A stretch of 64,000 nt of DNA from Phaeosaccion multiseriatum (GCA_965112735.1 OZ218964.1:2356001-2420000); one strand, 5' to 3'. Positions 1 to 60,869 are shown, numbered from the stretch's first letter. The notes: a model not told the origin generated them from the letters alone. Translations and numbers: made by a program.

Positions 1-1136
1 AGATGAAACGAGCGACGACGGCCTCGCGCCTATTGTACGCTGCAAGGTAGAGGGCTGAAGCGCCAATGTTGGTTCGTTTGTCCACACGTGCTCCCGCAGA
101 AAGAAGCTTCTCCACCACGGCGTCGTGTCCCTGTAGAGAGGCACCGAGAAGAGGAGTGGAACCTTCGAGGTCAGCCTTGTCGATGCTGGCGTGGGCCCTG
201 ATGAGCTGCTGTACGATACCCGCATGCCCATTAATCGATGCCGCCAGAAGCGGAGTAGCCCCGAGATAACTTGCGTGGTTCACATCCGCTTGGGCTGAGA
301 TGAGGTGCCTTACAACAGATCCATGTCCTTTCTGAGAGGCCACCCAAATCGGAGAGAAGCCCTGCTTCTCCGCCAAGTCGACGTTAGCGCGCGCCGAGAG
401 CAGCTGCTGCACTGTCGTGGAGTGCCCCGTTCCTGATGCTGCAATCAAGGGAGTAGCGCCTCTGGCATCCGCTTGGTCGACAGGGGCTCCAGCGTCCAAC
501 AGCCACCTTACCACCTGATCTTGTCCCTCGGCGCTAGCGGCTATCAACGGCGTGCTTCCGTGAGGTCCCTGTCTGGTGCGGAAGGAGGCCCCTTCGCGCA
601 GCAGAAAGTCCATGACATCCAGCCGACCGTGTTGTGCAGCCCTCAACATTGCGGTGTATCCTTCTTCGTCGACAGGCTGATCCAAACTCGCTTTGCCATG
701 TTTGGCGATGAGCTTCCCAACCACCGCTCTCACATTGGGGAAGCTCTTCCCTCTACGCAGGGCCTGCCCCAGCTGCTGGGCCTGGAGTTGTTGAGGGCAG
801 CGAATTCGGGGGGAAGAGACGCACATGCATAGGATAAAAGGGATCAACGGGAAGCTGCTGACTGCTTCGATACGTGCGCATCCCACCTCCGGGAACGTAT
901 CCGTTACCCCCCCTCCCTTTCCTCTCTCCAGATCTATTTCCTCAAAGCGGGGGAGAGGCCCATACACCGGATAAAAAGGGAACAGAGAGCTGCCCATTGC
1001 GTCGACACGTGAGCTTCCATCGCAGCTTCCGTACCCGCACAAGGCCCCTTTCTATGCTATACTCTTTCCTAAGGGCATCGTCTTATAGGAGGGCGCTAAG
1101 TCGTACCTCGCGCGTTAACGTTGCCTGATGCGCCAT
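1..1136 (-). CDS. Ankyrin-repeat protein, copy 1 (3' end beyond window); exon1 1107-1136, intron 782-1106, exon2 <1-781
   Basis: Manual translation MAHQATLTRE|AQQLGQALRRGKSFPNV...GSTPLIAASAEGQ...GATPLIAASGTGH...; GAG|GTACGA donor, CTCCAG| acceptor; colinear with the other 13 copies. Not in ORF track because it runs off the edge. Confidence 0.85.
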
Positions 1137-1232
1137 GGTGAGCAAGCGGCCCCTCCCTTGACACAGTAGTGCTGACAAGGGGGCTACAGAAGGCCTTCTC
1201 CGCGCCTGCTGTGCAGTAGTCGGTCGTTCTGC

Positions 1233-1240
1233 CTTTTATA
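1233..1240 (-). promoter_or_regulatory. Putative TATA box (TATAAAAG) 97 nt upstream of copy 1 ATG
   Basis: Consensus TATA in GC-rich context at constant spacing in copies 1, 5, 11 and 13; no transcript evidence. Confidence 0.4.
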
Positions 1241-1267
1241 CAATGGGGCCTCCCCATTATTACTAAG

Positions 1268-2021
1268 TATTATATTTTTTTTTCTCTTGTCTAAAAGTAA
1301 CGTCTCCACCGCCCCGGCAATCGCCCCGGGGGACAAAAGTTGATACCATTCTGTGGCGAGTGTTTTGATATTGCTGTTCCATCAAAAGGGACGAGATGGT
1401 ACCTCGTGGGGTCATAGTGGATGTCTCCACCCTGGCCCTCCATGCCTACCTGTGGCACCCCATACTTGGTGCGCTTGGTGGCTTCAGCCTTCTTGGCTGC
1501 CGCGAGTGCTTCCTTCGATGCCTTGGCCCTATTGGTGATGTTGGTGGCATCAGTGAGCGTGATGTCGATCATCAGGGACTTGTGGCCATCCCCATATTCG
1601 TGGTCAGGTGGAAGCTCGAACATCCTGGGGGGAGTCACGATGTCCATCTCCATCTGTTTGGCCACGTGGGCGTCACCCCTCACGCCGTTGCCCCCCCCTT
1701 TCCCTCGTCTCGCGGTGACGGTTCGTTCCCTCATGAAGGGGAAGCCGATGTTCTGCACTATCCCTCTGCCCAGTCAGGCCCTCGCTCTTCATCAACGCGA
1801 CAAGTGCCTTCTGCACAGCATTGGAGGTCTCTGAAGGCATTGGGTTTGGTGATCCGATTCACAGATCCCGAACCCAGGGGGGGGGGAGTTCCTTGCGTGG
1901 GCGAGGGCAGAGGCTGTGTTGAGTGCGCACAGACGCGACCGCGCAGCTGCTGCCTAGATGGGCGGTGCCTGCCTTTGGCTTCCACACGAGCACAACCCCC
2001 GCCTAGGACCTGGCGTTCACC
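1268..2021 (-). mobile_element. Decayed 3' fragment of an RLE-type (CRE-like) non-LTR retrotransposon: Zn-knuckle remnant, restriction-like endonuclease, A-rich tail
   Basis: Across frameshifts: LCSCG...HARNS...PNAFR..(H)NAVQKALV...MEMDIV...LMIDITLTD...AAKKAEATKRTKY...YHLVPF, then an A-rich run (AGAGAAAAAAAAATATAAT). Motif order matches the CCHC knuckle plus RLE of CRE/R2-group elements; recognised by eye. Confidence 0.7.
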
Positions 2022-2489: not shown

Positions 2490-3996
2490 TCAGCCCATCT
2501 CCTCCGCCATGCTCTCCCACGTCTCGCTCCCCACACTCCAGGGCCTCTCCAGCGGCAGGATTCCGCTCTCCTTGCCGAAGGTCGGATCCGTCCTTCGCAT
2601 GAGGTCCAGCGCGGTTTGGGACCGGAAGAAGGCTGCTGCCGCCTCCATAAGTCGCTGCTCAATGTCCCGGCCGAGCTGACACCGCCGTGCCCCAGCCAAG
2701 GCCTTGTCCACCGAAGCACCGGCCGAGAGGAGCTGCCGCGTTATCCCGTGGTGGTCTCTGAAGATGGCATAAAGGAGAGGGGTGCCACCGTTTGGTACTG
2801 TGATATCGATGGGGGATCCCGCAGAGATGAGACGAGCGACGACGGCCTCGCGCCTATTGTACGCTGCAAGGTAGAGGGCTGAAGCGCCATTGTTGGTTCG
2901 TTTGTCCACACGTGCTCCCGCAGAAAGAAGCTTCTCCACCACGGCGTCGTGTCCCTGTAGAGAGGCACCGTGAAGAGGAGTCGAACCTTCGAGGTCAGCC
3001 TTGTCGATGCTGGCGTGGGCCCAGATGAGCTGCTGTACGATGTCCGCATGCCCATGAATCGATGCCGCCAGAAGCGGAGTAGTCCCGAGATAACTTGCGT
3101 GGTCCACATCCGCTTGGGCTGCGATGAGGAGCCTTAGAACAGAGCTATGTCCTTTCTGAGAGGCATACCAAATCGGAGAACAACCGTGTTCCTCCGCCAA
3201 GTCGACGTTAGCACGCGCCGAGAGCAGCTGCTGCACTGTCGTAGAGTGCCCCATTACTGATGCTACAATCAAGGGAGTAGCGCCTGTGGCATCCACTTGG
3301 TCGACAGGGGCTCCAATGTCCAACAGCCACCTCACCACCTGATCGCGTCCGTTGCCGCTAGCTACTATTAATGGCGTGTCTCCGACGAGCCCGCATCTGG
3401 TGCGGAAGGAGGCCCCTTCCCGCAGCAGAAAGTCCATGACATCCAGCCGACCGTGTTGTGCAGCCCTCAACATTGCGGTGTATGCGGTATATGCTTCTTC
3501 GTCGACAGGCTGATCCAAACTCGCTTTGCCATGTTTGGCGATGAGCTCCCCAACCACCGCTTTCACATTGGGGAAGCTCTCCCCTCTGACCAGGGCCTGC
3601 CCCAGCCGCCGCGCCTGGAGTTGTTGAGGGAAACGATGTCGGGGGGGAGAGGCGCACATGCATAGGATGAAAGGATCAATAAGAAGCTGCTGACTACTTC
3701 GATACGTGCGTATCCCACCACCTCAGGGATCGTATCCGAAAAGCCCCCCCTCGCTTTGCTCTCTCCGAAACACAGTCAGAGTCCATCTATTTCCTCAAAG
3801 CGGGGGAGAGGCCCATACACCGGATGAAAAGGGATCAACGGAGAGCTTCCCACTGCGTCGACACGTGAGCTTCCCACCGCAGCTTCCGTATCCACACAAG
3901 GACCCTCGCCATGCTCTATTCTTTCCTAAGGACACCGTCTTATAGGAGGGCGCTAGGTCGTACCTCGGGCGTTAACGTTGCCTGCTGCTGCGCCAT
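2490..3996 (-). CDS. Ankyrin-repeat protein, copy 2 (8 ANK); exon1 3964-3996, exon2 2490-3614
   Basis: ORF 2490..3659 has eight 33-aa GxTPL..A...G repeats; exon1 MAQQQATLTPE in CACCATGG context; phase-0 GT-AG intron; in-frame 9-nt duplication (AYTAYTA). Confidence 0.9.
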
Positions 3997-4129
3997 GGTG
4001 AGCAAGCGGCCCCTCCCTTGAGACGGTAGTGCTGACAAGGGGGCTACAGGAGGCCTTCTCCCTGCTGCGCCTGCTGTGCAGTAGTTCGTCGCTCTGTCTT
4101 TTGTATCAGGCCTCCTCCCGCTGATATGT

Positions 4130-4201: not shown

Positions 4202-4204
4202 ACT

Positions 4205-8079: not shown

Positions 8080-9567
8080 TCAGCCCATCTCCTCCGCCAT
8101 GCTCTCCCACGTCTCGCTCCCCACACTCCAGGGCCTCTCCAGCGGCAGGATTCCGCTCTCCTTGCCGAAGGTCGGATCCGTCCTTCGCATGAGGTCCAGC
8201 GCGGTTTGGGACCGGAAGAAGGCTGCTGCCGCCTCCGTAAGTCGCTGCTCAATGTCCCGGCCGAGCTGATTCCGCCGTGCCCCAGCCAATGCCTTGTCCA
8301 CCGAAGCACCGGCCGAGAGGAGCTGCCGCGCTGTCCCGTGGTGGTCTCTGATGATGGCAGCAAGGAGAGGGGTGGCACCGTCTGATGCCGTGATATCGAT
8401 CCGGGATCCCGCAGAGATGAGACGAGCGACGACGGCCTCGTGCCCATTGTACGCTGCAAGGTAGAGGGGTGAAGCACCAATGTTGGTCATTTTGCCCACA
8501 CGTGCTCCCGCAGAGAGAAGCTTCTCCACCACGGCGTCGTGCCCTTCCTGACAGGCATTGCCAAGAGGAGTAGCACCTTGGAGGTCATCAGCCTTGTCGA
8601 TGCTGGCGTGGGCCCTGATGAGCTGCTGTACGATGCCCGCATGCCCTTTGAACGATGCCTTCCAAAGCGGAGTAGTCCCGAGAATACCTGCGTTGTTCAC
8701 ATCCGCTTGGGCTGAGATGAGGTGCCTTACAACAGAGCTATGTCCGTTCTGAGACGCAAGCCAAATCGGAGAAGAACCGTCTCCCGCTGCCAAGTCGACA
8801 CTAGCACGCGCCAAGAGCAGCTGCAGCACTGTCGTGGAGTGCCCCATAGTTGATGCTGCAATCAAGGGAGTAAATCCTCTGGCATCCGCTTGGTCGACAG
8901 GGGCTCCAATGTCCAACAACCGCCTCACCACCTGATCGCGTCCGTTGCCGCTAGCGGCTATCAATGGCGTGTCTCCGACGAGCCCGCATCTGGTGCGGAA
9001 GGAGGCCCCTTCCCGCAGCAGAAGGTCCATGACATCCAGCCGATCGTATTGTGCAGCCCTATACATTGCGGTATATCCTTCTTCGTCGATACGCTGATCC
9101 AAACTCGCTTTGCCATGTTTGGCGATGAGCTTGATAACCAGCGCTCTCACATTGGGGAAGCTCTCCCCTCTGTCCAGCGCCTGCCCCAGCCGCCGCGCCT
9201 GGTGTTGTTGAGGAAAACGATGTCGGGGGGGAGAGGCGCACATGCATATGATAAAAAGATCAACGGGAAGCTGCTCATAGCTTCGATACGTGCGCATCCC
9301 ACCTCAGGGATCGTATCCGAAAAGCCCCCCCTCGCTTGGATCTCTCCGAAACACAGATGTTTCCTCAAAAGCTGGGGAGAGGCGCATACACCGGATGAAA
9401 AGGGATCAACGGAGGCGAGGGCTGCCTGTTGCGTCGACACGTGAGCATCCCCCACCGCAGCTATCGTATCCGCAGAGGGACCTATTCTTTCCGATGGACA
9501 TCGTCATATCGTCATACAGGAGGGCGCTAGGTCGTACCTCGGGCGTTAACGTTGCCTGCTGCGCCAT
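8080..9567 (-). CDS. Ankyrin-repeat protein, copy 3; exon1 9538-9567, exon2 8080-9198
   Basis: ORF 8080..9297 ankyrin motifs; same splice sites; one-codon insertion (DDLQG). Confidence 0.9.
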
Positions 9568-9766: not shown

Positions 9767-12530
9767 TTCCTGCGAGAGCAAGCAGAGCAGGGGACAAGCA
9801 GGAGCCGGAGCCGCTGTATGGACTCCTCTCCCCCCCGCGAGACCAGCGGAGCCCTTCACCTCCTCCCCCCTTCTCCTGCAGGGCCTGGGCATCAGCACTC
9901 CCTCCCCCGGTACGGCTCTGCCCTTCCAGCACCCCTGGACCGATTCCGAGGGCCTGGCCCCGTGGTGCACCACGAATGCTGAGGTGAGTGGTGGCGACTG
10001 CGTGAGGGGTGCGTGAGCGAGCCAAGCTGTGAGCCCCCTGCTTTCGGCTAGATACAGCCTCACCTCCTCTTTAGGAGAGCTCCACTCGCCCACTCCCTTC
10101 CCCTCCCCCGCCCACCCCACCTCCCATACCCCATATCCCACACACCCACAGCCGCTCAAGCTCGTTCATTCTCCGGGCAGACAGGAGCTCCGCGTCGTCA
10201 GCGGGAGAGGGAAAGGGAGAAGGAGAGGGGGTGGGTAGCCGCACGCCGTCGCGAGGAGAGCATGTAGACGAACTCGAAACCGAACTCGATGCCGATGCCG
10301 ATGTCAATGTCGATGTGGAAGGCGCGCCCCTGGAGGAAGCAGGGGTGAGAGATGCCTCCATCTCCTTGTCCTCTTCCTCCCACGCGGCCTTGTTGCAGCG
10401 CGTGGGTCTCGCGATACCCAACTTTGACCGTGTGCAGCAGTATGAAGACCTGCAGCGGGAGCTGGAGATGGTCAGGGGGGAGGAGGAGAAGGACTACGCA
10501 GGAGGAGGGAGGACCCGAGCGACTAGAGGGGAGGGCTCTCGGCGGGGACAGACGACTCGGCCTGCCAGCGCTCGGCCTCGGATGGAGGGGGGCGCCGGGC
10601 AGACCCAGGGGGGGCAGGGTGGGCAGGAACGGAAGGAAGCAAGTGGCTGTAGATGAAAGTTGAGGGCTGAAGGCTGAATGACAGTATGACAGCAGCTGTC
10701 AAGGCCGAGTGGGGATGGAGGGGGGTCGGTACCAGAATGTTGGGGGGGCAAAGGCGCAAAGACGCCAAGGTGGATGATCAACAATTGAGTCAATTTCGCC
10801 CTTCTTTCTCTCTCTCTGTCGCTCTCGCTCTGGCTCTCTTTATCTCTCTCTCTCTCCCTCCTTGTCCCTCTCTCTCCCCTCTCTCTCTCGCTCTCGTCAC
10901 ATGCCTCTCTCTCTCCCACCTTTCCTCTCTCCCTCCTCTCTCCCTGTCTCTCCCTCCTTTCCACCTCCCCCCTCCGTCTACTCGTGGGCCACAGACGCGT
11001 ACACCGCTCTGCTTCGACAGCAGGCCAGGCAGCGCTCGCAGCGCCCGCGACATGAAGAGGCGGAACGAACAGCGGCAGCAGCAGCGCAGAGGGGGAAAGG
11101 GCGGCAGAGAAGGAGGGCTGCTGATGCTGGGGGCGGCAGCGGTTCTGCAGCAACAGCGGCAATCCGGCCTTCCTCCCTTCCGTCCTTCCGTCCTTCCTTC
11201 CTTCCTTCCTTCCTTCCTTCCTTCCTTCCTTCCTTCCTTCCTTCCTTCCTTCCTTCCTTCCTTCCTTCCTTCCTTCCTTCCTTCCTTCCTTCCTTCCTTC
11301 CTTCCTTCCTTTCCTTCCTTCCTTCCTTCCTTCCTTCCTTCCTTCCTTCCTTCCTTCCTTCCTTCCTTCCTTCCTTCCTTCCTTCCTTCTTCCCTCCCTC
11401 CCTTCCCCCCTTCCTTCCGTCCTTCCTTCCTTCCTTCCTTCGTTCCTTCCTTCGTTCCTTCGTTCCTTCCTTCCTTCCTCCCTCCCGTCCTTCCTTCCTT
11501 CCTTCCTCCCTCCCGTCCTTCCTTCCTTCCTTCCTTCCTTCCTTCCTTCCTTCCTTTCTTTCTTCCTTCCTCCCTTCCTTCCTTCCTCCCTTCCTTCCTT
11601 CCTTCCTTCGTTCCTTCGTTCCTTCCTTCGTTCCTTCCTTCCTTCCTTCCTTCCTTCCTTCCTTCCTTCCTCCCTTCCTCCCTTCCTCCCTTCCTTCCTT
11701 CCTTCCTTCCACTCATTGACTTAGCGCTCACTCTGACGACCTCTCCTTCCCCTCTCTTCTCTCTCTCTCCACATTCTTCACCCTCTGTCTTCCCCCTCCC
11801 CTCTGTCCACCCTTTCTCCCCTGCTGCCAGGGAACAAGTACGCATCATCGAAGAAGACCCTTCCGCTGCCGCCACCGGAGCGCCTTCCTTGTACAGAGAC
11901 CGTTCCAGATCGGTACAACAGCTTCGACCCGCCCCCTTGGACTCAATGCGGAGCGGTCTGCGATCGTGCCGGGCCTCGCGATCCCCCGGGGCGGAGGGGA
12001 GGGGGCGGGAGGAGGATACGTTGGGTGGAGGGCCAGGGGGGGAGGGGAGCATGAGCCATCGGAGCGTTCTCAATCTCGCCATGGGGGGGGGGGGGAGAAG
12101 CTCTGCCTCTGTTTCTGTCTATGGCTCCAACCCTTAGGAGGAGGAGGAGGAGGAGGAGGGGGGCGTCACAAATGGCTTCAGTACCACCAACACCAGGAGA
12201 GGGAGAGGGCGCTGGGAGGGGAGGGCAAGGTATTGGACTTGGGTATCAGCAGAGGCCCATTGGAAGCCCCGTCACAGGGACGGGCAGGAGAGAGAAGGAG
12301 GGGGTATCATTGGTGGTAGTGGTGGTGGTGGCGGGGTTGGTGTTAGGCCGGAGTCAGCCCCTGTGAGTCGGGGGGGGAGGGGTGAAGGCGGGGGTAGCGG
12401 GGGAGAGGAGGGAGGGACACCGCGAGGGAGGGTAGCAGGAGGAGGGGCAAGAGGAGGAGTAGGAGGAAGAGGAGGAGGAAGTGGAGGATGAGGGCGAGGC
12501 GGGCACGGCAGGTAGACGGGGAACCCATCC
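9767..12530 (+). pseudogene. Copy of plus-strand gene relic (internal deletion ending in the TTCC tract)
   Basis: Colinear with 4205-7180; junction aatccggc|cttcctccc at ~11168. Confidence 0.4.
11168..11710. repeat. (TTCC)n microsatellite, ~540 nt, interrupted
   Basis: Direct reading. Confidence 0.95.
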
Positions 12531-17684: not shown

Positions 17685-17718
17685 GCTCTGCCTTTTGTTA
17701 GGCTCCCAGCGATATGTT

Positions 17719-19852: not shown

Positions 19853-19948
19853 GGTGAGCAAGCGGCCCCTCCCTTGACACAGTAGTGCTGACAAGGGGGC
19901 TACAGAAGGCCTTCTCCGCGCCTGCTGTGCAGTAGTCGGTCGCTCTGC

Positions 19949-19956
19949 CTTTTATA
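19949..19956 (-). promoter_or_regulatory. Putative TATA box upstream of copy 5
   Basis: TATAAAAG, same spacing. Confidence 0.4.
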
Positions 19957-19967
19957 TGGCCTCCCCA

Positions 19968-36842: not shown

Positions 36843-36875
36843 GCTCTGCCTTTTGTTAGGCTCCCAGCGATATGT

Positions 36876-42305: not shown

Positions 42306-42306
42306 C

Positions 42307-46977: not shown

Positions 46978-47009
<32 letters not shown>

Positions 47010-47833
47010 CCTTCCTCCTTTCCTACTTCCTTTCCTTCCACTCATTGACTTAGCAGTCCCTCTCACGACCTCCTCCCATCCTCTCTTCTCTCTCTCTCCA
47101 CTCTCTCCATCCTCTCCTCCCCCTCCCCTCTGTCCACCCTTTCTCCCCTGCTGCCAGAGCAAGTACGCATCATCGAAGAAGATCCTTCTGCCGCCGCCAC
47201 CGGATCGCCTTTCTTGCACAGAGACCGTTCCAGATCGGTACAACACCTTCGACCTGCCCCCTTGGAGTCAACGCGGAGCGGTCTGCGATCGTTCCGGGCC
47301 TCGCGATCCCCCGGGATGGAGGGGAGGGGGCGGGAGGAGGATACGTTGGGTGGAGGGCCAGGGGGAGGGGGGAGCATGAGCCATCGGAGCGTTCTCAATC
47401 TCGCCATGGGGGGGGGGGGAGAAGCTCTGTCTATGGCTCAAACACTCAGGAGGGGGAGGAGGAGGAGGGGGGCGTCACAAATGGCTTCAGTACCACCACA
47501 CCAGGAGAGGGAGAGGGGGCTGGGAGGGGAGGGCAAGGTATTGGACTTGGGGATCAGCAGAGGCCCATTGGAAGCCCCGTCACAGGGACGGGCAGGAGAG
47601 AGGAGGAGGAGGTATCATTGGTGGTAGTGGTGGTGGCGGCGGGGTTGGTGTTAGGCCAGAGTCAGCCCCTGTGAGTCGGGGGGGGAGGGAAGGCGGGGGT
47701 AGCGGGGGAGAGGAGGGAGGGACACCGCGAGCGAGGGTAGCAGGGGGAGGGGCAAGAGGAGGAGTAGGAGGAAGAGGACGAGGAAGTGGAGGATGAGGAA
47801 GAGGCAGGCACGGCAGGTAGACGAGGAACCCAT
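44957..47833 (+). pseudogene. Copy of plus-strand gene relic (internal deletion at ~46351)
   Basis: Colinear; same deletion as ~40668. Confidence 0.4.
46634..47039. repeat. (TTCC)n microsatellite, ~400 nt
   Basis: Direct reading. Confidence 0.95.
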
Positions 47834-47834
47834 C

Positions 47835-47913
47835 CTCACTCACTCACTCACTCACTCACTCACTCACTCACTCACTCACTCACTCACTCACTCACTCACT
47901 CACCCACTCACTC
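47835..47913. repeat. (ACTC)n microsatellite
   Basis: Direct reading. Confidence 0.95.
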
Positions 47914-48798
47914 ATGCACCACGTATTCACTTTCTAGCTCTATTCTATAAGCGAAGTCCAGAGAGCAAATGCAATACACATGCTTCTCCAAGGTCGAGAG
48001 GCAAGCAGCAAGATTCACAGATGGATACAATTGCGGCACTCCGTATCCACTGCCTCCCCGCTACTCTCTTCCGTCCGCTGGGAAACATGGCTCACCCGTA
48101 CGCTTCTATCTGATCCCCACTTGATATTGCCGAGGGGGCAGAAATAGAGACCAAGAAGTAGCAGAGCACTGTGGAAGTCACTGAGTACCAGCTCATCTTG
48201 TTAGTTTACGTAATCTTTCGTAATAGCAAAGTGTTTCATCAGTCACTGAGTACGCGTAGACTCGATTGGGCGGAGCTTACCTACTGCCTCCACAGGGGCA
48301 CAACCCCCGCCTAGGACCTGGCGTTCACCTTCACCACTCTGTGTTTAGCAGGGCAGTACCCTTCTCTAATAATCTGTGACTACTTGCTGTGCCCGCATGC
48401 CCCACCCAGGAAGGAAGCCCTCGGCCTCTATCCATCGGGATTACACTCTCCCCCCTCTAAACGAGCTGACCTTCCCTCTCACCCCCCCCCCCTCAACCTA
48501 TACACTTCAACCATTGGTCCCATAAGCTACACACGTCACTCCCCTCCCCCCCGGACCCCCATCCTCCTGCGGTACTCTGACTCCTCTCTGCGACAGAGCA
48601 TCGCAATCACTTCACCGCTCTTACACCAAGCCAGTGTGCCGTGGGCTGTCTCTCTCGCATCGCATCCTGATGTACAGGCTCACTCGCATGGGCTGCATGA
48701 CTGGCTGGTGCAAGCGAGCAAGCTGGAGCGGTACTCTTTCGTTGCCAAAGTCGTCACTGCCCCTACCAGCCCCCACCTCGCACATCCCTCCTACTCGC

Positions 48799-50272
48799 TC
48801 AGCCCATCTCCTCCGCCATGCTCTCCCACGTCTCGCTCCCCACACTCCAGGGCCTCTCCAGCGGCAGGATTCCGCTCTCCTTGCCGAAGGTCGGATCCGT
48901 CCTTCGCATGAGGTCCAGCGCGGTTTGGGACCGGAAGAAGGCTGCTGCCGCCTCCATAAGTCGCTGCTCAATGTCCCGGCCGAGCTGATTCCGCCGTGCC
49001 CCAGCCAATACCTTGTCCACCGAAGCACCGGCCGAGAGGAGCTGCCGCGCTATCCCGTGCTGGTCATTGTGGATGGCAGCAAGGAGAGGAGTCATACCGG
49101 TTGCTGTGGTCGTATCGATGGGGGATCCCGCAGAGATGAGACGAGCGACGACGGCCTCGTGCCTATTGTATGCTGCAAGGTAGAGGGCTGAAGCGCCAAT
49201 GTTGGTTCGTTTGTCCACACGTGCTCCCGCAGAAAGAAGCTTCTCCACCACGGCGTCGTGTCCCTGTAGAGAGGCACCGAGAAGAGGAGTGGAACCTTCG
49301 AGGTCAGCCTTGTCGATGCTGGCGTGGGCCCTGATGAGCTGCTGTACGATACCCGCATGCCCATTAATCGATGCCGCCAGAAGCGGAGTAGTCCCGAGAT
49401 AACTTGCGTGGTTCACATCCGCTTGGGCTGCGATGAGGAGCCTTACAACAGAGCCATGTCCGTTCTGAGAGGCCATCCAAATCGGAGAACAACCGTGTTC
49501 CTCCGCCAAGTCGACGTTAGCACGCGCCGAGAGCAGCTGCTGCACTGTCGTAGAGTGCCCCATTACTGATGCTGCAATCAAGGGAGTAGCGCCTGTGGCA
49601 TCCACTTGGTCGACAGGGGCTCCAATATCCAACAGCCGCCTCACCACCTGATCGCGTCCGTTGCCGCTAGCGGCTATCAACGGCGTGCTTCCGTGAGGTC
49701 CCTGTCTGGTGCTGAAGGAGGCCCTTTCCCGCAGCAGCAGGTCCACGACATCCAGTCGACCGTATTGTGCAGCCACAAGCATTGCGGTATATCCCTCTTC
49801 GTCGATAGGCTGATCTAAGCTCGCTTTGCCATGTTTGGCGATGAGCTTGGTAACCACCGCTCTTACATTGGGGAAGCTGTCTTCTCTGTCCAGGGCCTGA
49901 CCTAGCCGCCGCGCCTGGTGTTGTGGAGGGCAGCGAATTCGGGGGGGAGAGACGCACATGCATAGGATAAAAGGATCAACAGGAAGCTGCTTGACTGCTT
50001 CGATAAGTTAGCATCCCACCTCAGGGATCGTATCCGAAATGCCCCCCCTCGCTTTGCTCTCTCCGAAACACAGATATTTCCTCAAAAGCGGGGGAGAGGC
50101 GCATACACCGGATAAAAAGGGAACGGAGAGCTGCCCACTGCGTCGTCACGTGAGAATCCCACCGCAGCTTCCATATCTGCATAAGGACTCTCTCTATGCT
50201 CTATTCTTTCCTAAGGACTTACAGGAGGGCGCTAGGTCGTACCTCGGGCGTTAACGTTGCCTGCTGCGCCAT
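48799..50272 (-). CDS. Ankyrin-repeat protein, copy 11; exon1 50243-50272, exon2 48799-49914
   Basis: ORF 48799..49959 ankyrin motifs; conserved splice sites. Confidence 0.9.
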
Positions 50273-50368
50273 GGTGAGCAAGCGGCCCCTCCCTTGAGAC
50301 GGTAGTGCTGACAAGGGGGCTACAGAAGGCCCTCTCCGCGCCTGCTGTGCAGTAGTCGGTCGCTCTGC

Positions 50369-50376
50369 CTTTTATA
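50369..50376 (-). promoter_or_regulatory. Putative TATA box upstream of copy 11
   Basis: TATAAAAG, same spacing. Confidence 0.4.
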
Positions 50377-50387
50377 TGGCCTCCTCA

Positions 50388-51125
50388 TTATTTTTTTTTC
50401 TCTTGTCTAAAAGTAACGTCTCCACCGCCCCGGGGGACAAAAGTTGATACCATTCTGTGGCGAGTGTTTTGATATTGCTGTTCCATCAAAAGGGACGAGA
50501 TGGTACCTCGTGGGGTCATAGTGGATGTCTCCACCCTGGCCCTCCATGCCTACCTGTGGCACCCCATACTTGGTGCGCTTGGTGGCTTCAGCCTTCTTGG
50601 CTGCCGCAAGTGCCTCCTTCGAGGCCTTGGCCCTATTGGTGATGTTGGCGGCATCAGTGAGCGTGATGTCGATCATCAGGGACTTGTGGCCATCCCCATA
50701 GTACTCGTGGTCAGATGGAAGCTCGAACATCCTGGGGGGAGTCACGATGTCCATCTCCATCTGTTTGGCCACGTGGGCGTCACCCCTCACGCCGTTGCCC
50801 CCCCCTTTCCCTTGTCTCGCGGTGACGGTTCGTTCCCTCATGAAGGGGAAGCCGATGTTCTGCACTATCCCTCTGCCCAGGCCCTCGCTCTTCATCAACG
50901 CGACAAGTGCCTTCTGCACAGCATTGGAGGTCTCGGAAGGCATTGGGTTTGGTGATCCGATTCACAGATCCCGATCCCAGGGGGGGGGAGTTCCTTGCGT
51001 GGGCGAGAGGGCAGAGGCTGTGCTGAGTGCGCGCAGACGCGACCGCGCAGCTGCTGCTTAGATGAGCGGAGCTTGCCTTTGGCTTCCACACGAGCACAAC
51101 CCCCGCCTATGACCTGGCGTTCACC
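50388..51125 (-). mobile_element. Decayed RLE non-LTR retrotransposon fragment
   Basis: ORF 50407..50943 NAVQKALVALMKSEGLGRG...MDIV...IDITLTD...KRTKY...LVPF. Confidence 0.7.
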
Positions 51126-51574
51126 TTTACAATTGTGTGTTTCTAAGCTACGACTCTTTGCTGTGCCCCGCATGCCCCACCCAGGAAGGAAGCCCTCGGC
51201 CTCTATCCATCGGGATTGCACTTCTCCCCCCTCCACATGAGCTGACCTTCCCTCTCACCCCCCCCCCCCTCAAGCTATACACTGCATCCATTGGGCCCGT
51301 AAGCTACACACGTGACTCCCCTCCCCCCCGGACCCCCTACCTCCTCTACTCCGACTCCTCTCTGCGACAGAGCATCGCAATCACTTCACCGCTCTTACAC
51401 CAAGCCAGTGTGCCGTGGGCTGTCTCTCTCTCGTATCGCATCCTGATGTACAGGTTCACTCGCATGGGCTGCATGACTGGCTGGTGCAAGCGAGGAAGCT
51501 GGAGCGGTACCCTTTCGCTGCCAAAGTCGTCGTTGCCCCTACCAGCCCCCACCTCGCACATCCCTCCTACTCGC

Positions 51575-53062
51575 TCAGCCCATCTCCTCCGCCATGCTTT
51601 CCCACGTCTCGCTCCCCACACTCCAGGGCCTCTCCAGCGGCAGGATTCCGCTCTCCTTGCCGAAGGTCGGATCCGTCCTTCGCATGAGGTCCAGCGCGGT
51701 TTGGGACCAGAAGAAGGCTGCTGCCGCCTCCATAAGTCGCTGCTCAATGTCCCGGCCGAGCTGACGCCGCCGTGCCCAAGCCAAGGCCTTGTCCACCGAA
51801 GCACCGGCCGAGAGGAGCTGCCGCGCAGTCCCGTGGTGGTCATTGTAGATGGCAGCAAGGAGAGGGGTGGCACCGTTTGGTGCTGTGACATGGATGGGGG
51901 ATCCCGCAGAGATGAGACGAGCGACGGCGGCCTCGCGCCCATTCTGCGCTGCAAGGTAGAGGGGTGTAGCGCCATTGTTGGTCCTTTTGCCCACACGTGC
52001 TCCCGCAGAAAGAAGCTTCTCCACCACGGCGTCGTGCCCTTCCTGACAGGCAACGTGAAGAGGAGTAGCACCTTGGAGGTCAGCCTTGTCGATGCTGGCG
52101 TGGGCCCTGATGAGCTGCTGTACGATACCCGCATGCCCTTGGAACGATGCCTTCGAAAGCGGAGTAGTCCCGTCATTATCTGCGTTGTTCACATCCCCTT
52201 GGGCTGAGATGAGGAGCCTAACAACAGAGCCATATCCGTTCTCAGAGGCCACCCAAATCGGAGAGAAGCCCTGCTTGTCCGCCAAGTCGACGTTAGCGCG
52301 CGCCGAGAGCAGCTGCTGCACTGTCGTGGAGTGCCCCATAGTTGATGCTGCAATCAAGGGAGTAAATCCTCTGGCATCCGCTTGGTCGACAGGGGCTCCA
52401 ATGTCCAACAGCCGCCTCACCACCTGATCGCGTCCGTTGCCGCTAGCTATTATCAATGGCGTGTCTCCGACGAGCCCGCATCTGGTGCGGAAGGAGGCCC
52501 CTTCCCGCAGCAGAAAGTCCATGACATCCAGCCGACCGTGTTGTGCAGCCCTCAACATTGCGGTATATCCTTCTTCGTCGATAAGCTGATCCAAACTCGC
52601 TTTGCCATGTTTGGCGATGAGCTTCAGAACCACCGCTCTCACATTGCGGAAGCTGTCCCCTCTACGCAGGGCCTGCCCCAGCTGCCGCGCCTGGTGTTGT
52701 TGAGAATAACGATGTCGGGGGGGAGAGGCGCACATGCATAGGATAAAGGGGTCAACAGGAAGCTGCTTGACTGCTTCGATACGTGCGCATCCCACCTCAG
52801 GGATCGTATCCGAAAAGCCCCCCCTCGCTTTTCTCTCTCCGAAACACAGTCAGAGTCCATCTATTTCCTCAAAGCGGGGGAGAGGCCCATACACCGGATA
52901 AAAAGGGAACGGAGAGCTGCCCACTGCGTCGACACGTGAGCTTCCCATCGCAGCTTCCGTACCCGCACAAGGACCCTCTCTATGCTCTATTCTTTCCTAA
53001 GGATTTATCACATCTCATATAGGTCGTACCTCGGGCGTTAACGTTGCCTGCTGCTGCGCCAT
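51575..53062 (-). CDS. Ankyrin-repeat protein, copy 12; exon1 53030-53062, exon2 51575-52690
   Basis: ORF 51575..52795 ankyrin motifs; conserved splice sites. Confidence 0.9.
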
Positions 53063-53265
53063 GGTGAGCAAGCGGCCCCTCCCTTGAGACGGTAGTGCTG
53101 ACAAGGGGGCTACAGGAGGCCTTCTCCCTGCTGCGCCTGCTGTGCAGTAGTTCGTCGCTCTGTCTTTTGTATCAGGCCTCCTCCCGCTGATATGTTTAGT
53201 TATGGAGGCCTCTGAAGGCATTGGGTTTGGTGATCCGATTTTCACAGATCCCGATCCCAGGGGGG

Positions 53266-55256
53266 TGCGAGAGCAAGCAGAGCCGGGGGGGGTCAGTGGG
53301 AGGAGAAGGAGAAGGGCAAGCAGGAGCAGGAGCCGCTGTATGGACTCCTCTCCCTCCCGCGAGACCAGCGGAGCCCTTCAGCTTCTCCCCCCTTCTCCTG
53401 CAGGGCCTGGGCATCAGCACTCCCTCCCCCGGTACGGCTCGGCTCTTCCAGCACCCCTGGACCGATTCCGAGGGCCTGGCCCCGTGGTGCACCACGAATG
53501 CTGAGGTGAGTGGTGGCGACTGCGTGAGGGGTTCGTGAGCAAGCCAAGCTGTGAGCCCCCTGCTTTCGGCTAGATACAGCCTCACCTCCTCTTGAGGAGA
53601 GCTCCACTCGCCCACTCGCTTCCCCTCCCCCGCCAGTTCTGCAGCAACAGCGGCAATCCGGTCAAGCCTCTGCGGTGAGGGAGGGAGTTGGAGATACAGA
53701 GGGAGGGAGTGAGCGAGTGCTAGAGTGATGGAGGGAGTGAGGTAGAGTGAAAGGGGGTGAAAGCGTGAGGGAGTTGAATTGGAGCGGGAGGAAGTGAGGG
53801 AGCGAGAGCGGGGGGGGGGAGGAAGGAAGAAGGGTAGCAGCGCCGCCAGCATGGCAGTGAGGTCTCGCAACAGAGAAGACAGCGATGTGTGTATTGAATG
53901 AGTAATTGATGCCCTCGGTCCTGTGTGTGCTCTGCTCCTCTGCCGCTCTGCCGCACCATTCATGTCTGCTCGATCCTGCTCTACGCGGCTCTGTCCTTAC
54001 TCCTCATGTCTCATCCCAAAGGCCAAGCTTCGGAGTCGTCGGGAGAAGCAGCAGCGGCGGAGCAGCGGCCATCGCGGCGACAGGCGTGGTTGGATCCAGC
54101 ACGGCCAGGGAAGGAGCAAGGCCGGTGACGGCTGCTGCTGCTGTACTACCAACTGCTGTATCTCGAGACGAGGTGCTGGAGTGGAGTAAGCAGATCGAGA
54201 TGGCACTGGACAGGAGGGCAGAGCTCGTCGAGGGCGGCAAGATGTTCGCCGTCAATGGAAGGTGAGGGGGAAGGGGGGTGAAGGGGTGAGGGAGGGAGGG
54301 AGGGAGGGTGTGAGGGAGGGTGTGAGGGAGGGAGGGAGGGACCGAAAGAGGGGATGGAGCGACGAAACGATGGGGCGACTCCCCGCAGCACCGTGGTGCG
54401 TTCTGCTCTACCCCTCTTGACATACGCTTCCTCCCTGCCTCCATCCTCCCTTCCGTCCTTCCTTCCTTCCTTCCTTCCTTCCTTCCTTCCATCCTTCCTT
54501 CCTTCCTTCCTTCCTTCCTTCCTTCCTTCCTTCCTTCCTTCCTTCCTTCCTTCCTTCCTTCCTTCCTTCCTTCCTTCCTTCCTTCCTTCCTTCCTTCCTT
54601 CCTTCCTTCCTTCCTTCCTTCCTTCCTTCCTTCCTTCCTTCCTTCCTTCCTTCCTTCCTTCCTTCCTTCCTTCCTTCCTTCCTTCCTTCCTTCCTTCCTT
54701 CCTTCCTTCCTTCCTTCCTTCCTTCCATGCTTCCTTCCTTCCTTCCTTCCCTCGTTCGTTCGTTCGTTCGTTCCACTCATTGACTTAGCGTTGACTCTGA
54801 CGACCTCCCCTCCCCCTCTCTTCTCTTCGCCACCCTCTCCACCCTCTCCTCTCTGTCCACGCTTCCTCCCCTTTTCCCCCTGCTGCAAGGGAACAAGTAC
54901 GCATCATCGAAGAAGATCCTTCCGCCGCCGCCACCGGAGCGCCTTCCTTGCACAGAGACCGTTCCAGATGGGACAGCCGGATGCAACAGTGTGGACCCGC
55001 CCCCTTGGAGGTAGCGCGGAGCGGTCTGCGATCGTTCCGGGCCTCGCGATCACCCGGGGTGGAGGGGAGGGGGCGGGAGGAGGATACGTTGGGTGGAGGG
55101 CCAGGGGGGGAGGGGAGCATGAGCCATCGCAGCGTTCTCAATCTCGCCATTGGGGGGGGGGGGGAAGCTCTGTCTATGGCTCCAACACTCAGTAGGAGGA
55201 AGAGAATGAGGAAGTGGAGGAAGAGGCAGGCACGGCAGGTAGACGGGGAACCCATC
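53266..55256 (+). pseudogene. Copy of plus-strand gene relic (large deletions at ~53633 and ~55195)
   Basis: Junction cccccgc|cagttctgcag; remaining blocks colinear. Confidence 0.4.
54440..54774. repeat. (TTCC)n microsatellite ending in a short (TTCG)n
   Basis: Direct reading. Confidence 0.95.
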
Positions 55257-56164: not shown

Positions 56165-57620
56165 TCAGCCCATCTCCTCCGCCATGCTCTCCCACGTCTC
56201 GCTCCCCACACTCCAGGGCCTCTCCAGCGGCAGGATTCCGCTCTCCTTGCCGAAGGTCGGATCCGTCCTTCGCATGAGGTCCAGCGCGGTTTGGGACCGG
56301 AAGAAGGCTGCTGCCGCCTCCATAAGTCGATGCTCAATGTCCCGGCCGAGCTGATTCCGCCGTGCCCCAGCCAATGCCTTGTCCACCGAAGCACCGGCCG
56401 AGAGGAGCTGCCGCGCTATCCCGTGCTGGTCATTGTGGATGGCAGCAAGGAGAGGAGTCATAGCGGTTGCTGTGGTCGTATCGATGGGGGATCCCGCAGA
56501 GATGAGACGAGCGACGACGGCCTCGCGCCTATTGTACGCTGCAAGGTAGAGGGCTGAAGCGCCAATGTTGGTTCGTTTGTCCACACGTGCTCCCGCAGAA
56601 AGAAGCTTCTCCACCACGGCGTCGTGTCCCTGTAGAGAGGCACCGAGAAGAGGAGTGGAACCTTCGAGGTCAGCCTTGTCGATGCTGGCGTGGGCCCAGA
56701 TGAGCTGCTGTACGATGCCCGCATGCCCATTAATCGATGCCGCCAGAAGCGGAGTAGCCCCGAGATAACTTGCGTGGTTCACATCCGCTTGGGCTGAGAT
56801 GAGGTGCCTTACAATAGATCCATGTCCTTTCTGAGAGGCATACCAAATCGGAGAATAACCGTGTTCCTCCGCCAAGTCGACGTTAGCACGCGCCGAGAGC
56901 AGCTGCTGCACTGTCGTAGAGTGCCCCATTACTGATGCTGCAATCAAGGGAGTAGCGCCTGTGGCATCCACTTGGTCGACAGGGGCTCCAATGTCCAACA
57001 GCCACCTCACCACCTGATCGCGTCCGCCGCCGCTAGATACTATCAATGGCGTGTGTCCGACGAGCCCGCATCTGGTGCGGAAGGAGGCCCCTTCGCGCAG
57101 CAGAAAGTCCATGACATCCAGCCGACCGTGTTGTGCAGCCCTCAACATTGCGGTGTATCCTTCTTCGTCGACAGGCTGATCCAAACTCGCTTTGCCATGT
57201 TTGGCGATGAGCTCCCCAACCACCGCTCTCACATTGGGGAAGCTCTCCCCTCTACGCAGGGCCTGCCCCAGGTGCTGGGCCTGGAGTTGTTGAGGGCAGT
57301 GAATTCGGGGGGGAAGAGACGCACATGCATAGGATAAAAGGGATCAACGGGAAGTTGCTGACTGCTTCGATACGTGCGCATCCCAGGGAACGTATCCGTT
57401 ACCCCCCCTCCCTTTCCTCTTTCCAGATCTATTTCCTCAAAGTGGGGGAGAGGCCCATACACCGGATAAAAAGGGAACAGAGAGCTGCCCATTGCGTCGA
57501 CACGTGAACTTCCCACCGCACAAGGACCCTTTCTATGCTATACTCTTTCCTAAGGGCATCGTCTTATAGGAGGGCGCTAACAAGTCGTACCTCGCGCGTT
57601 AACGTTGCCTGATGCGCCAT
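56165..57620 (-). CDS. Ankyrin-repeat protein, copy 13; exon1 57591-57620, exon2 56165-57280
   Basis: ORF 56165..57232, nearly identical to copy 5; exon1 MAHQATLTRE. Confidence 0.9.
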
Positions 57621-57716
57621 GGTGAGCAAGCGGCCCCTCCCTTGACACAGTAGTGCTGACAAGGGGGCTACAGAAGGCCCTCTCCGCGCCTGCTGTGCAG
57701 TAGTCGGTCGTTCTGC

Positions 57717-57724
57717 CTTTTATA
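57717..57724 (-). promoter_or_regulatory. Putative TATA box upstream of copy 13
   Basis: TATAAAAG, same spacing. Confidence 0.4.
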
Positions 57725-57734
57725 TGGCCTCCCC

Positions 57735-58924
57735 ATTATTATTATATTTTTTTTTCTTTTGTCTAAAAGTAACGTCTCCACCGCCCCGGGGGACAAAAGT
57801 TGATACATTCTGTATTGACTTGGGTGGCGAGTGCTTTCATAAATATCAAATGCGCCTTGCTGTTCCATCCCAAAAGGGACGAGATGGTACCTCGTGGGGT
57901 CATAGTGGATGTCTCCACCCTGGCCCTCCATGCCTACCTGTGGCACCCCATACTTGGTGCGCTTGGTGGCTTCAGCCTTCTTGGCTGCCGCACAAGTGCT
58001 TCCTTCGATGCCTTGGCCCTATTGGTGATGTTGGTGGCATCAGTGAGCGTGACGTCGATCATCAGGGACTTGTGGCCATCCCCATAGTACTCGTGGTCAG
58101 ATGGAAGCTCGAACATCCTGGGGGGAGTCACGATGTCCATCTCCATCTGTTTGGCCACGTGGGCGTCACCCCTCACGCCGTTGCCCCCCCCTTTCCCTCG
58201 TCTCGCGGTGACGGTTCGTTCCCTCATGAAGGGGAAGCCGATGTTCTGCACTATCCCTCTGCCCAGTCAGGCCCTCGCTCTTCATCAACGCGACAAGTGC
58301 CTTCTGCACAGCATTGGAGGTCTCGGAAGGCATTGGGTTTGGTGACCCGATTCACAGATCCTGATCCCAGGGGGGGGGAGTTCCTTGCGTGGGCGAGGGC
58401 AGAGGCTGTGTTGAGTGCGCACAGACGCGACCGCGCAGCTGCTGCTTAGATGAGCGGAGCTTGCCTTTGGCTTCCACACGAGCACAACCCCCGCTTAGGA
58501 CCTGGCGTTCACCTTTTCACGGCCTTCCCGGTCGGATACCTCTCCCCAACACTCACAATTAGGTAAGAGGGGGTACTTGCCAGTCGGAAGTTAGAGAGGA
58601 GGACGAGTCTTTGCGCACCCGGCACCGCCCCTCTGACGGTGCCGCGCACACTCCAACCCACCCGATTCTCTATCTCCCCGCGGTAGATCATACCAATGGG
58701 TACCCCTCGAATATCTCCCCACTGAGTCCACCAGTCCCCCGGGGCGGGTGTGTGGGAGAAGATTCACCGCGTTAGCTGCTTTCAGGGCAGCGACTCCTAT
58801 CCTCGCCTCCACTCAACCACACCACACCACAGTCCTCTTATGCCACATCCTCAAGTTTCTAAACCCCATCCTCCCTCGCCAGTCCGTGAAAAGTCGTTTT
58901 CCCACCGGGGTACGAAAACTCCCC
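57735..58924 (-). mobile_element. Decayed RLE non-LTR retrotransposon fragment, least deleted 3' end
   Basis: ORF 57668..57946 retains YHLVPFGMEQQGAF (the P-x-x-x-E-x-x-G motif lost by frameshift in the other copies); ORF 57934..58251 has IDVTLTD. Confidence 0.72.
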
Positions 58925-59372
58925 TTACAATTGCGTGTTTCTAAGCTGTGACTACTTGCTGTGCCCTGCATGCCCCACCCAGGAAGGAAGCCCTCAGCCT
59001 CTATCCATCGGGATTACAATCTCTCCCCCCTTCAAACGAGCTGACCCTCCCTCTCACCCCCCCCCCCTCAAGCTATACACTTCATCCATTGGTCCCATAA
59101 GCTACACACGTGACTCCCCTCCCCCCCCCGGACCCCCTACCTCCTGTACTCCGACTCCTCTCTGCGACAGAGCATCGCAATCACTTCGCCGCTCTTACAC
59201 CAAGCCAGTGTGCCGTGGGCTGTCTCTCTCCCTCGCATCGCATCCTCATGTACAGGTTCACTCGCATGGGCTGCATGACTGGTGCAAGCGAGCAAGCTGG
59301 AGCGGTACTCTTTCGTTGCCAAAGTCCTCGCTGCCCCTTCCAGCCCCCACCTCGCACATCCCTCCTACTCGC

Positions 59373-60869
59373 TCAGCCCATCTCCTCCGCCATGCTCTCC
59401 CACGTCTCGCTCCCCACACTCCAGGGCCTCTCCAGCGGCAGGATTCCGCTCTCCTTGCCGAAGGTCGGATCCGCCCTTCGCATGAGGTCCAGCGCGGTTT
59501 GGGACCGGAAGAAGGCTGCTGCCGCCTCCATAAGTCGCTGCTCAATGTCCCGGCCGAGCTGCCACCACCGTGCCCCAGCCAAGGCCTTGTCCACCGAAGC
59601 ACCGGCCGAGAGGAGCTGCCGCGCAGTCCCGTGCTGGTCATTGTGGATGGCATAAAGGAGAGGGGTGCCACCCTGTGATGTCGTGACATCGATGGGGGAT
59701 CCCGCAGAGATGAGACGAGCGACGGCGGCCTCGCGCCCATTCTCCGCTGCAAGGTGGAGGGGTGAAGCGCCGATGTTGGTTCGTTTGTCCACACGTGCTC
59801 CCGCAGAAAGAAGCTTCTCCACCACGGCGTCGTGTCCCTGTAGAGAGGCACCGTGAAGAGGAGTGGAACCTTCGAGGTCAGCCTTGTCGATGCTGGCGTG
59901 GGCCCAGATGAGCTGCTGTACGATGCCCGCATGCCCATTAATCGATGCCGCCAGAAGCGGAGTAGTCCCGACATAACTTGCGTGGTCCACATCCGCTTGG
60001 GCTGAGATGAGGAGCCTTACAACAGAGCTATGTCCTTTCTGAGAGGCATACCAAATCGGAGAACAACCGTGTTCGTCCGCCAAGTCGACGTTAGCACGCG
60101 CCGAGAGCAGCTGCTGCACTGTCGTAGAGTGCCCCATTACTGATGCTGCAATCAAGGGAGTAGCGCCTGTGGCATCCACTTGGTCGACAGGGGCTCCAAT
60201 GTCCAACAGCCGCCTCACCACCTGATCGCGTCCGTTGCCGCTAGATACTATCAATGGCGTGTCTCCGACGAGCCCGCATCTGGTGCGGAAGGAGGCCCCT
60301 TCCCGCAGCAGAAAGTCCATGACATCCAGCCGACCGTGTTGTGCAGCCCTCAACATTGCGGTGTATCCTTCTTCGTCGACAGGCTGATCCAAACTCGCTT
60401 TGCCACGTTTGGCGATGAGCTTCCCAACCACCGCTCTCACATTGGGGAAGCTCTCCCCTCTACGCAGGGCCTGCCCCAGCCGCCGCGCCTGGTGTTGTTG
60501 AGGGAAACGATGTCGGGGGGGAGAGGCGCACATGCATAGGATGAAAGGATCAATAAGAAGCTGCTGACTACTTCGATACGTGCGTATCCCACCACCTCAG
60601 GGATCGTATCCGAAAAGCCCCCCCTCGCTTTGCTCTCTCCGAAACACAGTCAGAGTCCATCTTTTTTTTAAAGCGGGGGAGAGGCCCATACACCGGATGA
60701 AAAGGGATCAACGGAGAGCTTCCCACTGCGTCGACACGTGAGCTTCCCACCGCAGCTTCCGTATCCACACAAGGACCCTCGCCATGCTCTATTCTTTCCT
60801 AAGGACACCGTCTTATAGGAGGGCGCTAGGTCGTACCTCGGGCGTTAACGTTGCCTGCTGCTGCGCCAT
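59373..60869 (-). CDS. Ankyrin-repeat protein, copy 14; exon1 60837-60869, exon2 59373-60488
   Basis: ORF 59373..60533 ankyrin motifs; conserved splice sites. Confidence 0.9.

Follow-up and report, generated by a model that had tools for sequence, protein, structure and literature searches.

A tandem array of ankyrin genes

We analysed a 64,000-nt stretch of DNA from Phaeosaccion multiseriatum (GCA_965112735.1 OZ218964.1:2356001-2420000), hereafter the window, to which all counts refer, and found that the whole of it is a single head-to-tail tandem array of ankyrin-repeat genes on the minus strand, with a unit length of 2.8-5.7 kb. A BLASTN search of the window with one copy as query recovered 14 copies, all on the minus strand, at 88-95% DNA identity (Table 1). 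A preliminary description of this DNA had counted 14 or more intact genes up to position 60869; this coordinate coincides with the end of the last exon 1, and 14 copies are indeed found, but 13 of them are complete and copy 1, cut by the window start, lacks its C-terminal end. The homology is not limited to the genes, as a whole 5.5-kb unit aligns with every other unit at ~85-94%, spacers included. Units come in two forms, long ones (~4.6-5.7 kb), the spacer of which carries a (CTTC)n tract, and four with a short spacer. GC content is ~60% across the window with no compositional break. The array probably continues past the window end, since the spacer upstream of copy 14 matches the unit up to position 64000.

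We found a predicted two-exon gene model that is common to 14/14 copies: the ATG, the GTACGA donor and the AG acceptor are kept, and exon 2 is open. Exon 1 has 10-11 codons, reading MAQQ(Q)ATLTPE or, in three copies, MAHQATLTRE, with a good ATG context and a length difference that corresponds to one in-frame CAG; the intron that follows measures 310-353 nt, and all the remaining coding sequence lies in one large exon (1116-1413 nt). Upstream of the start codon, the frame is closed by a stop at a distance of 99-315 nt. An unspliced alternative, with a start inside the intron, fails in four copies, where that start is either missing or in the wrong frame, and we therefore favour the spliced model. 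Copies 2 and 9 have in common a 9-nt in-frame insertion (+3 residues) at the start of repeat 1.

Architecture and predicted fold of the proteins

The large exon encodes a 37-residue N-terminal capping repeat, eight 33-residue ankyrin repeats and a 69-residue tail. Pfam searches with three copies matched Ank_2 (E = 3e-45 to 1e-82) and Ank (E = 2e-44 to 9e-68), ankyrin families being the only ones found in the genes, and the 33-residue register with its G-x-TPL...G-H pattern was recovered in all repeats. Repeats within one copy are strongly diverged, repeats 3 and 4 being about one third identical by eye; the sole internally alike part is a duplicated block of repeats 3-5 in copy 7.

From an alignment of 13 copies, AlphaFold2 predicts a regular solenoid with paired helices in every repeat (mean predicted local distance difference test, pLDDT, 86), in which helix 1 spans register positions 7-14 and helix 2 positions 17-25. 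Past the last repeat the model continues with two helices, the first short and the second long (residues 313-339, pLDDT 65-83), before ending in a disordered stretch (343-371). The best Foldseek matches in the PDB are designed ankyrin repeat proteins (DARPins), ankyrin-B and ankyrin-1 (ankyrin-B/R), with E-values down to 4e-17 and template modelling scores up to 0.77. The proteins had been described as free of a signal peptide, a transmembrane segment and an NTPase domain, and we likewise found no hydrophobic segment in the protein, a hydrophilic N-terminus that is not signal-like, and no NTPase among the Pfam matches of the genes and of the open reading frames (ORFs) in the spacers.

The copies differ at the predicted binding face

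For the comparison between copies, we fixed the DARPin positions 2, 3, 5, 13, 14 and 33 of the repeat before looking at the data, which over eight repeats gives 48 columns. This full set reportedly goes back to the work of Binz et al. in 2003. In DARPins, six positions of the concave face are randomised per repeat, and the residues listed in a published account correspond to offsets 3, 5, 13 and 14 (PMC3602593). We found that the amino acid varies in 41 of the 48 DARPin-position columns compared to 68 of the 216 other ankyrin columns (Fisher p = 5e-12), and that three or more residues occur in 27/48 and 17/216 columns, respectively (p = 6e-13). Accordingly, the claim that the same few positions of each repeat vary strongly is borne out.

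Along the register, nonsynonymous diversity peaks at positions 1, 2, 3, 5, 9, 10, 13 and 14 (0.13-0.36) and is 0-0.11 nearly throughout elsewhere. The variable sites had been said to coincide largely with the positions randomised in DARPins, which holds for 2, 3, 5, 13 and 14 but not for position 33, where nonsynonymous diversity is 0.07, while positions 1, 9 and 10 are hypervariable though not randomised in DARPins. Positions 1-5 form the beta-turn, and 9, 10, 13 and 14 lie on helix 1, one helical turn apart; the surface made of the beta-turn and the inner helix is the ankyrin binding interface (PMC4986451). Both the register and the helix limits of the AlphaFold2 model thus place the variable sites on the binding face, as had been proposed.

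The groove residues of the 13 complete genes make up 12 different sets, and each repeat has 5-11 variants. Between copies 13 and 5 there are only 6 residue differences, all of which fall outside the ten positions that were assigned to the binding face in each repeat. The residue strings quoted in the preliminary description for repeat 3 (VM, TM, GT, EG, ER, EW), repeat 5 and repeat 8 are all present, and so are DR and DNIGATPLLQASRY, but the latter two occur in the repeats that the copy at 27163 has beyond the usual eight. Its statement that the framework is almost invariant does not hold, the framework having ~5% nucleotide diversity and a ratio of nonsynonymous to synonymous change (dN/dS) of ~0.7-0.9.

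Evidence for diversifying selection on the groove

Three kinds of test, namely tree-free counts, likelihood on fixed partitions and a mixture test of the M1a/M2a type, gave dN/dS significantly above 1 for the face codons, in line with the diversifying selection proposed earlier. Pooled Nei-Gojobori counts yield a dN of 0.26 at the six DARPin positions compared to a dS of 0.066 at the other ankyrin codons; nucleotide diversity is 0.099 in the intron and 0.053 at scaffold third positions, so that face codons change ~2-5 times faster than silent or intron sites. Minimum numbers of changes per site, counted without a tree, are 0.60-0.70 nonsynonymous and 0.29-0.36 synonymous at the face, and 0.19 synonymous elsewhere.

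For the codon likelihood we used our own implementation, in which each of four gene segments has its own tree and branch lengths are fixed; an analysis on a single tree was dropped as the segment trees are discordant. Two unconverged fits, in which the nested model was the better one, were redone with several starts, and only the redone results are used. With a shared silent rate, the six DARPin positions have a dN/dS (omega) of 4.6 (twice the log-likelihood difference, 2dlnL, = 108, p = 3e-25) and the other codons ~1.0; with a silent rate of their own, omega at these six positions is 2.05 (p = 0.0013). The eight observed face positions have an omega of 3.3-5.0 (p = 6e-8), compared to 0.6-1.05 for control partitions made of shifted or of buried and convex-side sets. 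The mixture test assigned 24% of codons to a class with omega 5.9 (2dlnL = 160) and identified 33 sites with a posterior above 0.95. Among these, 29 are ankyrin sites, 25 of which fall at positions 1, 2, 3, 5, 9, 10, 13 and 14; three others are in the N-terminal cap and one lies just past the last repeat. Whole-gene dN/dS is ~1. Since face dN/dS exceeds 1 in every test and silent sites of the same codons are not raised, the sequence comparison supports diversifying selection on the predicted binding face, and the scaffold residues appear to be individually under weak constraint.

It may be argued that a young birth-and-death family with gene conversion, in which an unconstrained surface sits on a constrained scaffold, would give a similar picture with no positive selection at all. 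We consider this improbable. A whole-gene dN/dS of ~1 and a scaffold value that indicates weak constraint are what it would lead one to expect, and site-model tests are known to give false positives under heavy recombination. Unconstrained sites, however, cannot outpace neutral ones, and the face dN of 0.24-0.26 is 2.5 times the intron diversity and 4 times the scaffold dS. Furthermore, omega stays above 1 even when face codons are given their own silent rate (p = 0.0013 to 6e-8), the tree-free ratio within face codons is ~2, and convex-side and shifted control positions do not rise above ~1.

Coding integrity and read coverage

Exon 2 has three gap runs over 1113 nt, each a multiple of 3, while 18 of the 26 gap runs in the intron (353 nt) and 11 of the 13 in the 3′ flank (~400 nt) are not multiples of 3. 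Furthermore, no stop codon was found in any copy despite at least 168 inferred residue changes. Because exon 2 is free of stops and of the frame-breaking indels that fill the intron and the 3′ flank, we conclude that the reading frame is under selection.

Four read runs of unstated kind from one sample contain this sequence, and we compared them over 47500-53300 (5,801 letters). Exons, intron and spacers are covered alike, and no joint skips the intron; the runs thus behave like DNA and are uninformative on expression. In one of them (X1), the summed contig depth reaches 17,955 at the tail end of the gene compared to 338 in the least-covered stretch (up to ~50-fold), which hints that the family has far more copies than the 14 in the window. 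In a second sample of the same organism (X5), only 9% of the words of the unit are present.

That the array is an untranscribed macrosatellite carrying genes, the ORFs of which persist through recency or constant homogenisation, seems to us a small chance, somewhat below that of a family free of positive selection. The absence of RNA support, of any homologue in the protein collections searched and of strong constraint on the scaffold would all agree with a macrosatellite. The DNA of the copies, however, has diverged by 5-12% with 0 frame-breaking indels in exon 2, against 18 in 353 nt of intron and 11 in ~400 nt of 3′ flank, none of the residue changes has created a stop, and the start codon and splice signals are kept in every copy.

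Mutation at face codons

At the six DARPin positions, diversity is raised at all three codon positions (0.25/0.22/0.20), and many face-codon differences span two or three bases, with all bases involved. The rise at all three codon positions first suggested hypermutation, which was dropped once truly silent sites had been separated. For pairs of copies with the same residue, silent diversity is 0.08 (0.02-0.16) at the eight face positions and 0.052 (0.033-0.074) elsewhere; four-fold degenerate third positions have a diversity of 0.012-0.024 at the face compared to 0.054 elsewhere. The transition/transversion ratio is 0.76 at face codons and 1.43 elsewhere. Because truly silent face change is not raised, this ratio is lower and all bases are involved, the pattern fits selection on residues rather than hypermutation.

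Change might still be targeted to the face codons with no selection on the protein, be it through local hypermutation, through mutation of several nucleotides at once or through templated micro-conversion in which diverged copies act as donors, an explanation to which we give very little weight. Besides the multi-base differences and the rise at the three codon positions, it would account for the higher silent rate that the codon model prefers at these positions (r = 2.2-2.7), and each unit contains a transposon-like fragment. The excess silent signal is, however, confined to positions 32/33, the spread of changes over bases and the lower transition/transversion ratio fit residue selection, and the targets follow the protein register, with no DNA motif seen. 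A diversity-generating retroelement is not apparent either, as none of ten spacer ORFs contains a recognisable reverse transcriptase and the changes involve all bases rather than adenine specifically.

Codons 32/33 of repeats 3, 7 and 8 (for example at ~49510 and 49110) have a silent diversity ~4 times that of the scaffold, with synonymous variants at intermediate frequency. These variants follow two sequence types of the family.

A constant tail

The C-terminal tail had been called almost invariant, and we found 58 of its 69 positions invariant in amino acid. Its nucleotide diversity is 0.013, compared to 0.044 in the 3′ flank and 0.053 at scaffold third positions, and dN and dS are both ~0.02. 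The diversity of the 207 nt coding for it (48802-49008 on the minus strand, and equivalents) is thus lower by a factor of ~3-4 than that of either silent scaffold sites or the 3′ flank. With diversity below that of both the 3′ flank and the scaffold, and with dN and dS both low, the 3′ part of the unit appears to be homogenised as well as conserved; low diversity in the tail may reflect homogenisation by conversion or an additional constraint at the DNA or RNA level.

The profile search for relatives of the constant C-terminal region that the preliminary description had proposed found none in proteins, Pfam, the protein Atlas, or viral and metagenome contigs. A phmmer search of 1.84 billion representative proteins with the tail returned three weak repetitive matches only, Pfam gave no match even at E = 10, F-box, PRANC, SOCS-box and BTB models included, although a very remote similarity is possible, and tail features in the protein Atlas were not above chance. 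Since BLASTP alignments to two distant ankyrin proteins pair the tail with further ankyrin repeats, it probably begins as a degenerate ankyrin cap and ends in a disordered peptide of acidic and aromatic character.

Mosaic structure of the copies

The four-gamete test, applied to 139 informative sites, fails for 42% of the pairs and gives a minimum (Rm) of 40 incompatible intervals, some of which lie within one codon and so point to recurrent change. Compatibility between neighbouring sites is higher than under permutation (p < 0.001). Trees of the four gene segments disagree; for instance, the copies at 13441 and 48799 share a distinctive block in repeats 1-2 and diverge further on. Joints in read contigs skip 2777-2778 nt, which is the size of a unit and fits alternative arrangements of units.

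The second repeat 3-5 block of copy 7 shows up as a 297-nt period at 27650-28249, the two copies of which are 89% alike, and is joined out of register at the TPL motif common to repeat 6 and repeat 3. We read it as the product of an out-of-register exchange between diverged copies and not as a fresh duplication in place. Collectively, these comparisons show that the copies are mosaics and that the array changes through duplicated units, unequal crossing-over and gene conversion in short, frequent tracts.

Spacers and origin of the array

The spacer just upstream of four genes contains a 178-codon ORF within a segment of ~860 nt that is unbroken in the four short spacers; in long units this segment is split, with only its flanking pieces kept on both sides of the spacer. 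In the protein Atlas, the ORF scored 0.95 against unnamed eukaryotic clusters from scattered phyla; a reverse-transcriptase protein is among the structural neighbours of one such match, though not among the ORF's own. The ORF has no Pfam match, and a PDB sequence search was empty. These results fit a transposon-derived fragment. The (CTTC)n microsatellites of the long spacers (240-560 nt, 60-140 units) give rise to long spurious ORFs with GRKE-type repeats, and a Yae1_N match in the scan of spacer ORFs was discarded as it falls on a microsatellite translation. No domain was found by Pfam in ten spacer ORFs, and Rfam has no match anywhere in the window.

An origin of the array by insertion of a giant virus or transposon, rather than as a host family, is scarcely credible: giant viruses and poxviruses do carry tandem ankyrin paralogues and every unit holds a transposon-like fragment, but a conserved GT-AG intron of spliceosomal type is found in every copy, the GC content is even throughout, the IMG/VR viral contigs hold no relative, and metagenome contigs gave only generic ankyrin matches at 23-43% identity.

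Table 1. Coordinates of the gene copies and spacer features in the window. The first coordinate of each complete copy is its stop-codon end.
Feature	Coordinates	Strand	Parts and remarks
Copy 1	1-1136	-	exon 2 (partial) 1-781, intron 782-1106, exon 1 1107-1136; 255 codons open
Copy 2	2490-3996	-	exon 2 2490-3614, intron 3615-3963, exon 1 3964-3996; 9-nt in-frame insertion in repeat 1
Copy 3	8080-9567	-	exon 2 8080-9198, exon 1 9538-9567
Copy 4	13441-14903	-	exon 2 13441-14556, exon 1 14874-14903
Copy 5	18395-19852	-	exon 2 18395-19510, exon 1 19823-19852; short upstream spacer
Copy 6	21592-23081	-	exon 2 21592-22707, exon 1 23052-23081
Copy 7 (11 repeats)	27163-28951	-	exon 2 27163-28575, exon 1 28919-28951; repeat 3-5 block duplicated
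Copy 8	32468-33969	-	exon 2 32468-33583, exon 1 33937-33969
Copy 9	37556-39059	-	exon 2 37556-38680, exon 1 39030-39059; 9-nt in-frame insertion in repeat 1
Copy 10	43270-44767	-	exon 2 43270-44385, exon 1 44738-44767
Copy 11 (reference)	48799-50272	-	exon 2 48799-49914, tail codons 48802-49008, intron 49915-50242, exon 1 50243-50272
Copy 12	51575-53062	-	exon 2 51575-52690, exon 1 53030-53062
Copy 13	56165-57620	-	exon 2 56165-57280, exon 1 57591-57620
Copy 14	59373-60869	-	exon 2 59373-60488, exon 1 60837-60869
Spacer upstream of copy 14	60870-64000	-	unit match runs to the window end
~860-nt spacer segment	50280-51150	-	178-codon ORF 50407-50943; transposon-derived in look
~860-nt segment, other unbroken occurrences	1144-2038, 19860-20717, 57628-58516		short spacers
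(CTTC)n microsatellites	11168-11710, 17212-17489, 31323-31560, 36378-36647, 40937-41500, 46620-47039, 54427-54774, 63167-63430	.	long spacers

Comparison with known systems

A whole-protein search found generic ankyrin proteins only, at 27-41% identity, and our literature searches brought up no account of algal ankyrin genes that are free-standing, arrayed and under diversifying selection. The earlier statement that no such system has been described stands in so far as no relative of the family or of its tail was found; the kind of system, however, is established, with repeat paralogues and selection on the binding face known for example from fungal NOD-like receptors (NLRs; PMC4986451). Their ankyrin, tetratricopeptide (TPR) and WD repeats are under positive selection, which in the ankyrin repeats concerns the inner helix and the beta-hairpin of the concave face, and a role in non-self recognition has been proposed (Dyrka et al. 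2014, PMC4986451). The array resembles them in the selection on the ankyrin concave face, the change in repeat number and the exchange of sequence between copies. Unlike fungal NLRs, its genes have no NACHT, NB-ARC or effector domain (Pfam, genes and spacer ORFs), and whereas the fungal repeats are near-identical within one gene, here they are diverged and the variation is between paralogues at the same repeat.

Candidate pathogen receptors of a brown alga are built from shuffled exons of leucine-rich repeats (LRRs) or TPRs with ROCO or NB-ARC domains and are proposed to be immune receptors (Zambounis et al. 2012, PMC3341825). Like the genes of the array, they make up a multigene family that encodes repeat proteins in a stramenopile and owes its diversity to recombination. 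The array differs from them in that its repeats are ankyrin, all in one exon, and without a signalling domain.

With DARPins, which are its best structural match, the family shares capped ankyrin-only proteins, a constant scaffold and hypervariability at five of the six randomised positions. It differs in being a natural germline array, in position 33, which is not hypervariable here, and the variable positions 1, 9 and 10, in having 8-11 repeats instead of two or three, and in its constant tail.

Expanded families of ubiquitin-ligase substrate adaptors under positive selection include the F-box and MATH-BTB proteins of nematodes and plants, ANK-SOCS-box proteins and the poxvirus ANK-PRANC proteins. 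The array is like them in combining a variable binding module with a constant one, in its clustered paralogues and in the selection on the binding surface. Its tail, however, matches no F-box, PRANC, SOCS-box or BTB model and, with its predicted short helix, long helix and disordered end, differs from the ligase-adaptor modules, so that a link to a ligase would be speculation.

Discussion

Our results point, with a probability of about three in four, to a lineage-specific array of ankyrin-only genes, the groove of which is under diversifying selection combined with gene conversion, while the tail is kept constant and homogenised; as computational evidence goes, this combination has good support. 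The comparison of the copies shows units to be duplicated, crossing-over to be unequal and short tracts to be converted often, and an exchange out of register has added three repeats to copy 7. It also shows amino-acid change to be favoured at about eight positions per repeat, namely 1, 2, 3 and 5 in the beta-turn and 9, 10, 13 and 14 on one side of the inner helix. Inside the cell, the copies may then differ in the partner that they bind, or may bind variants of a single partner, while the constant tail may connect all copies to one shared downstream partner. The array would thus represent a repertoire, encoded in the germline, of soluble proteins that act in recognition or as adaptors, and conflict would be its driving force, the opponents being for instance viruses, parasites or selfish elements.

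Several points weigh against this hypothesis. Both the gene model and its expression remain predictions, the four DNA-like runs giving no transcript support, and the variable sites are placed on the concave face by the repeat register and by where the helices of the model begin and end, rather than by atomic coordinates. The scaffold dN/dS of ~0.7-0.9 is high for a constrained protein. Heavy recombination inflates likelihood-ratio tests, and ours were run with code of our own on fixed trees; in addition, codons often differ at more than one nucleotide, which a codon model built on single steps can misread. The silent diversity of 0.18-0.22 at positions 32/33, sole source of the excess silent signal, is unexplained, linkage to two old sequence types being the only lead. 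Finally, no result connects the family to a pathogen, partner or pathway.

A more far-reaching proposal is that the array forms part of a genome-wide ankyrin-based system of intracellular recognition, in which a germline set of soluble binders, reshuffled by gene conversion, would detect viral or parasite proteins in a stramenopile alga and hand them on through the constant tail to a shared partner. We put this forward tentatively and hold it to be unlikely, though less so than any of the rival explanations of the array discussed above. If true, it would amount to a class of immune receptors built on ankyrin repeats without an NTPase domain.

Little is known about the systems that serve defence and recognition in stramenopile algae. 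To our knowledge, every well-studied variable repeat receptor, including the LRR proteins of plants and animals, the variable lymphocyte receptors of lampreys and the repeats of fungal NLRs, is joined to a signalling or anchoring module. The array by contrast appears to encode free-standing ankyrin proteins with a groove that evolves several times faster than neutral sites. If expressed, these proteins would be a natural counterpart of the engineered DARPin libraries and a model of how conversion and selection may jointly hold a scaffold and tail constant while diversifying a binding surface. The 13 intact genes with their 12 groove sets would then provide a candidate set for what the alga must recognise, for example viral or parasite proteins.

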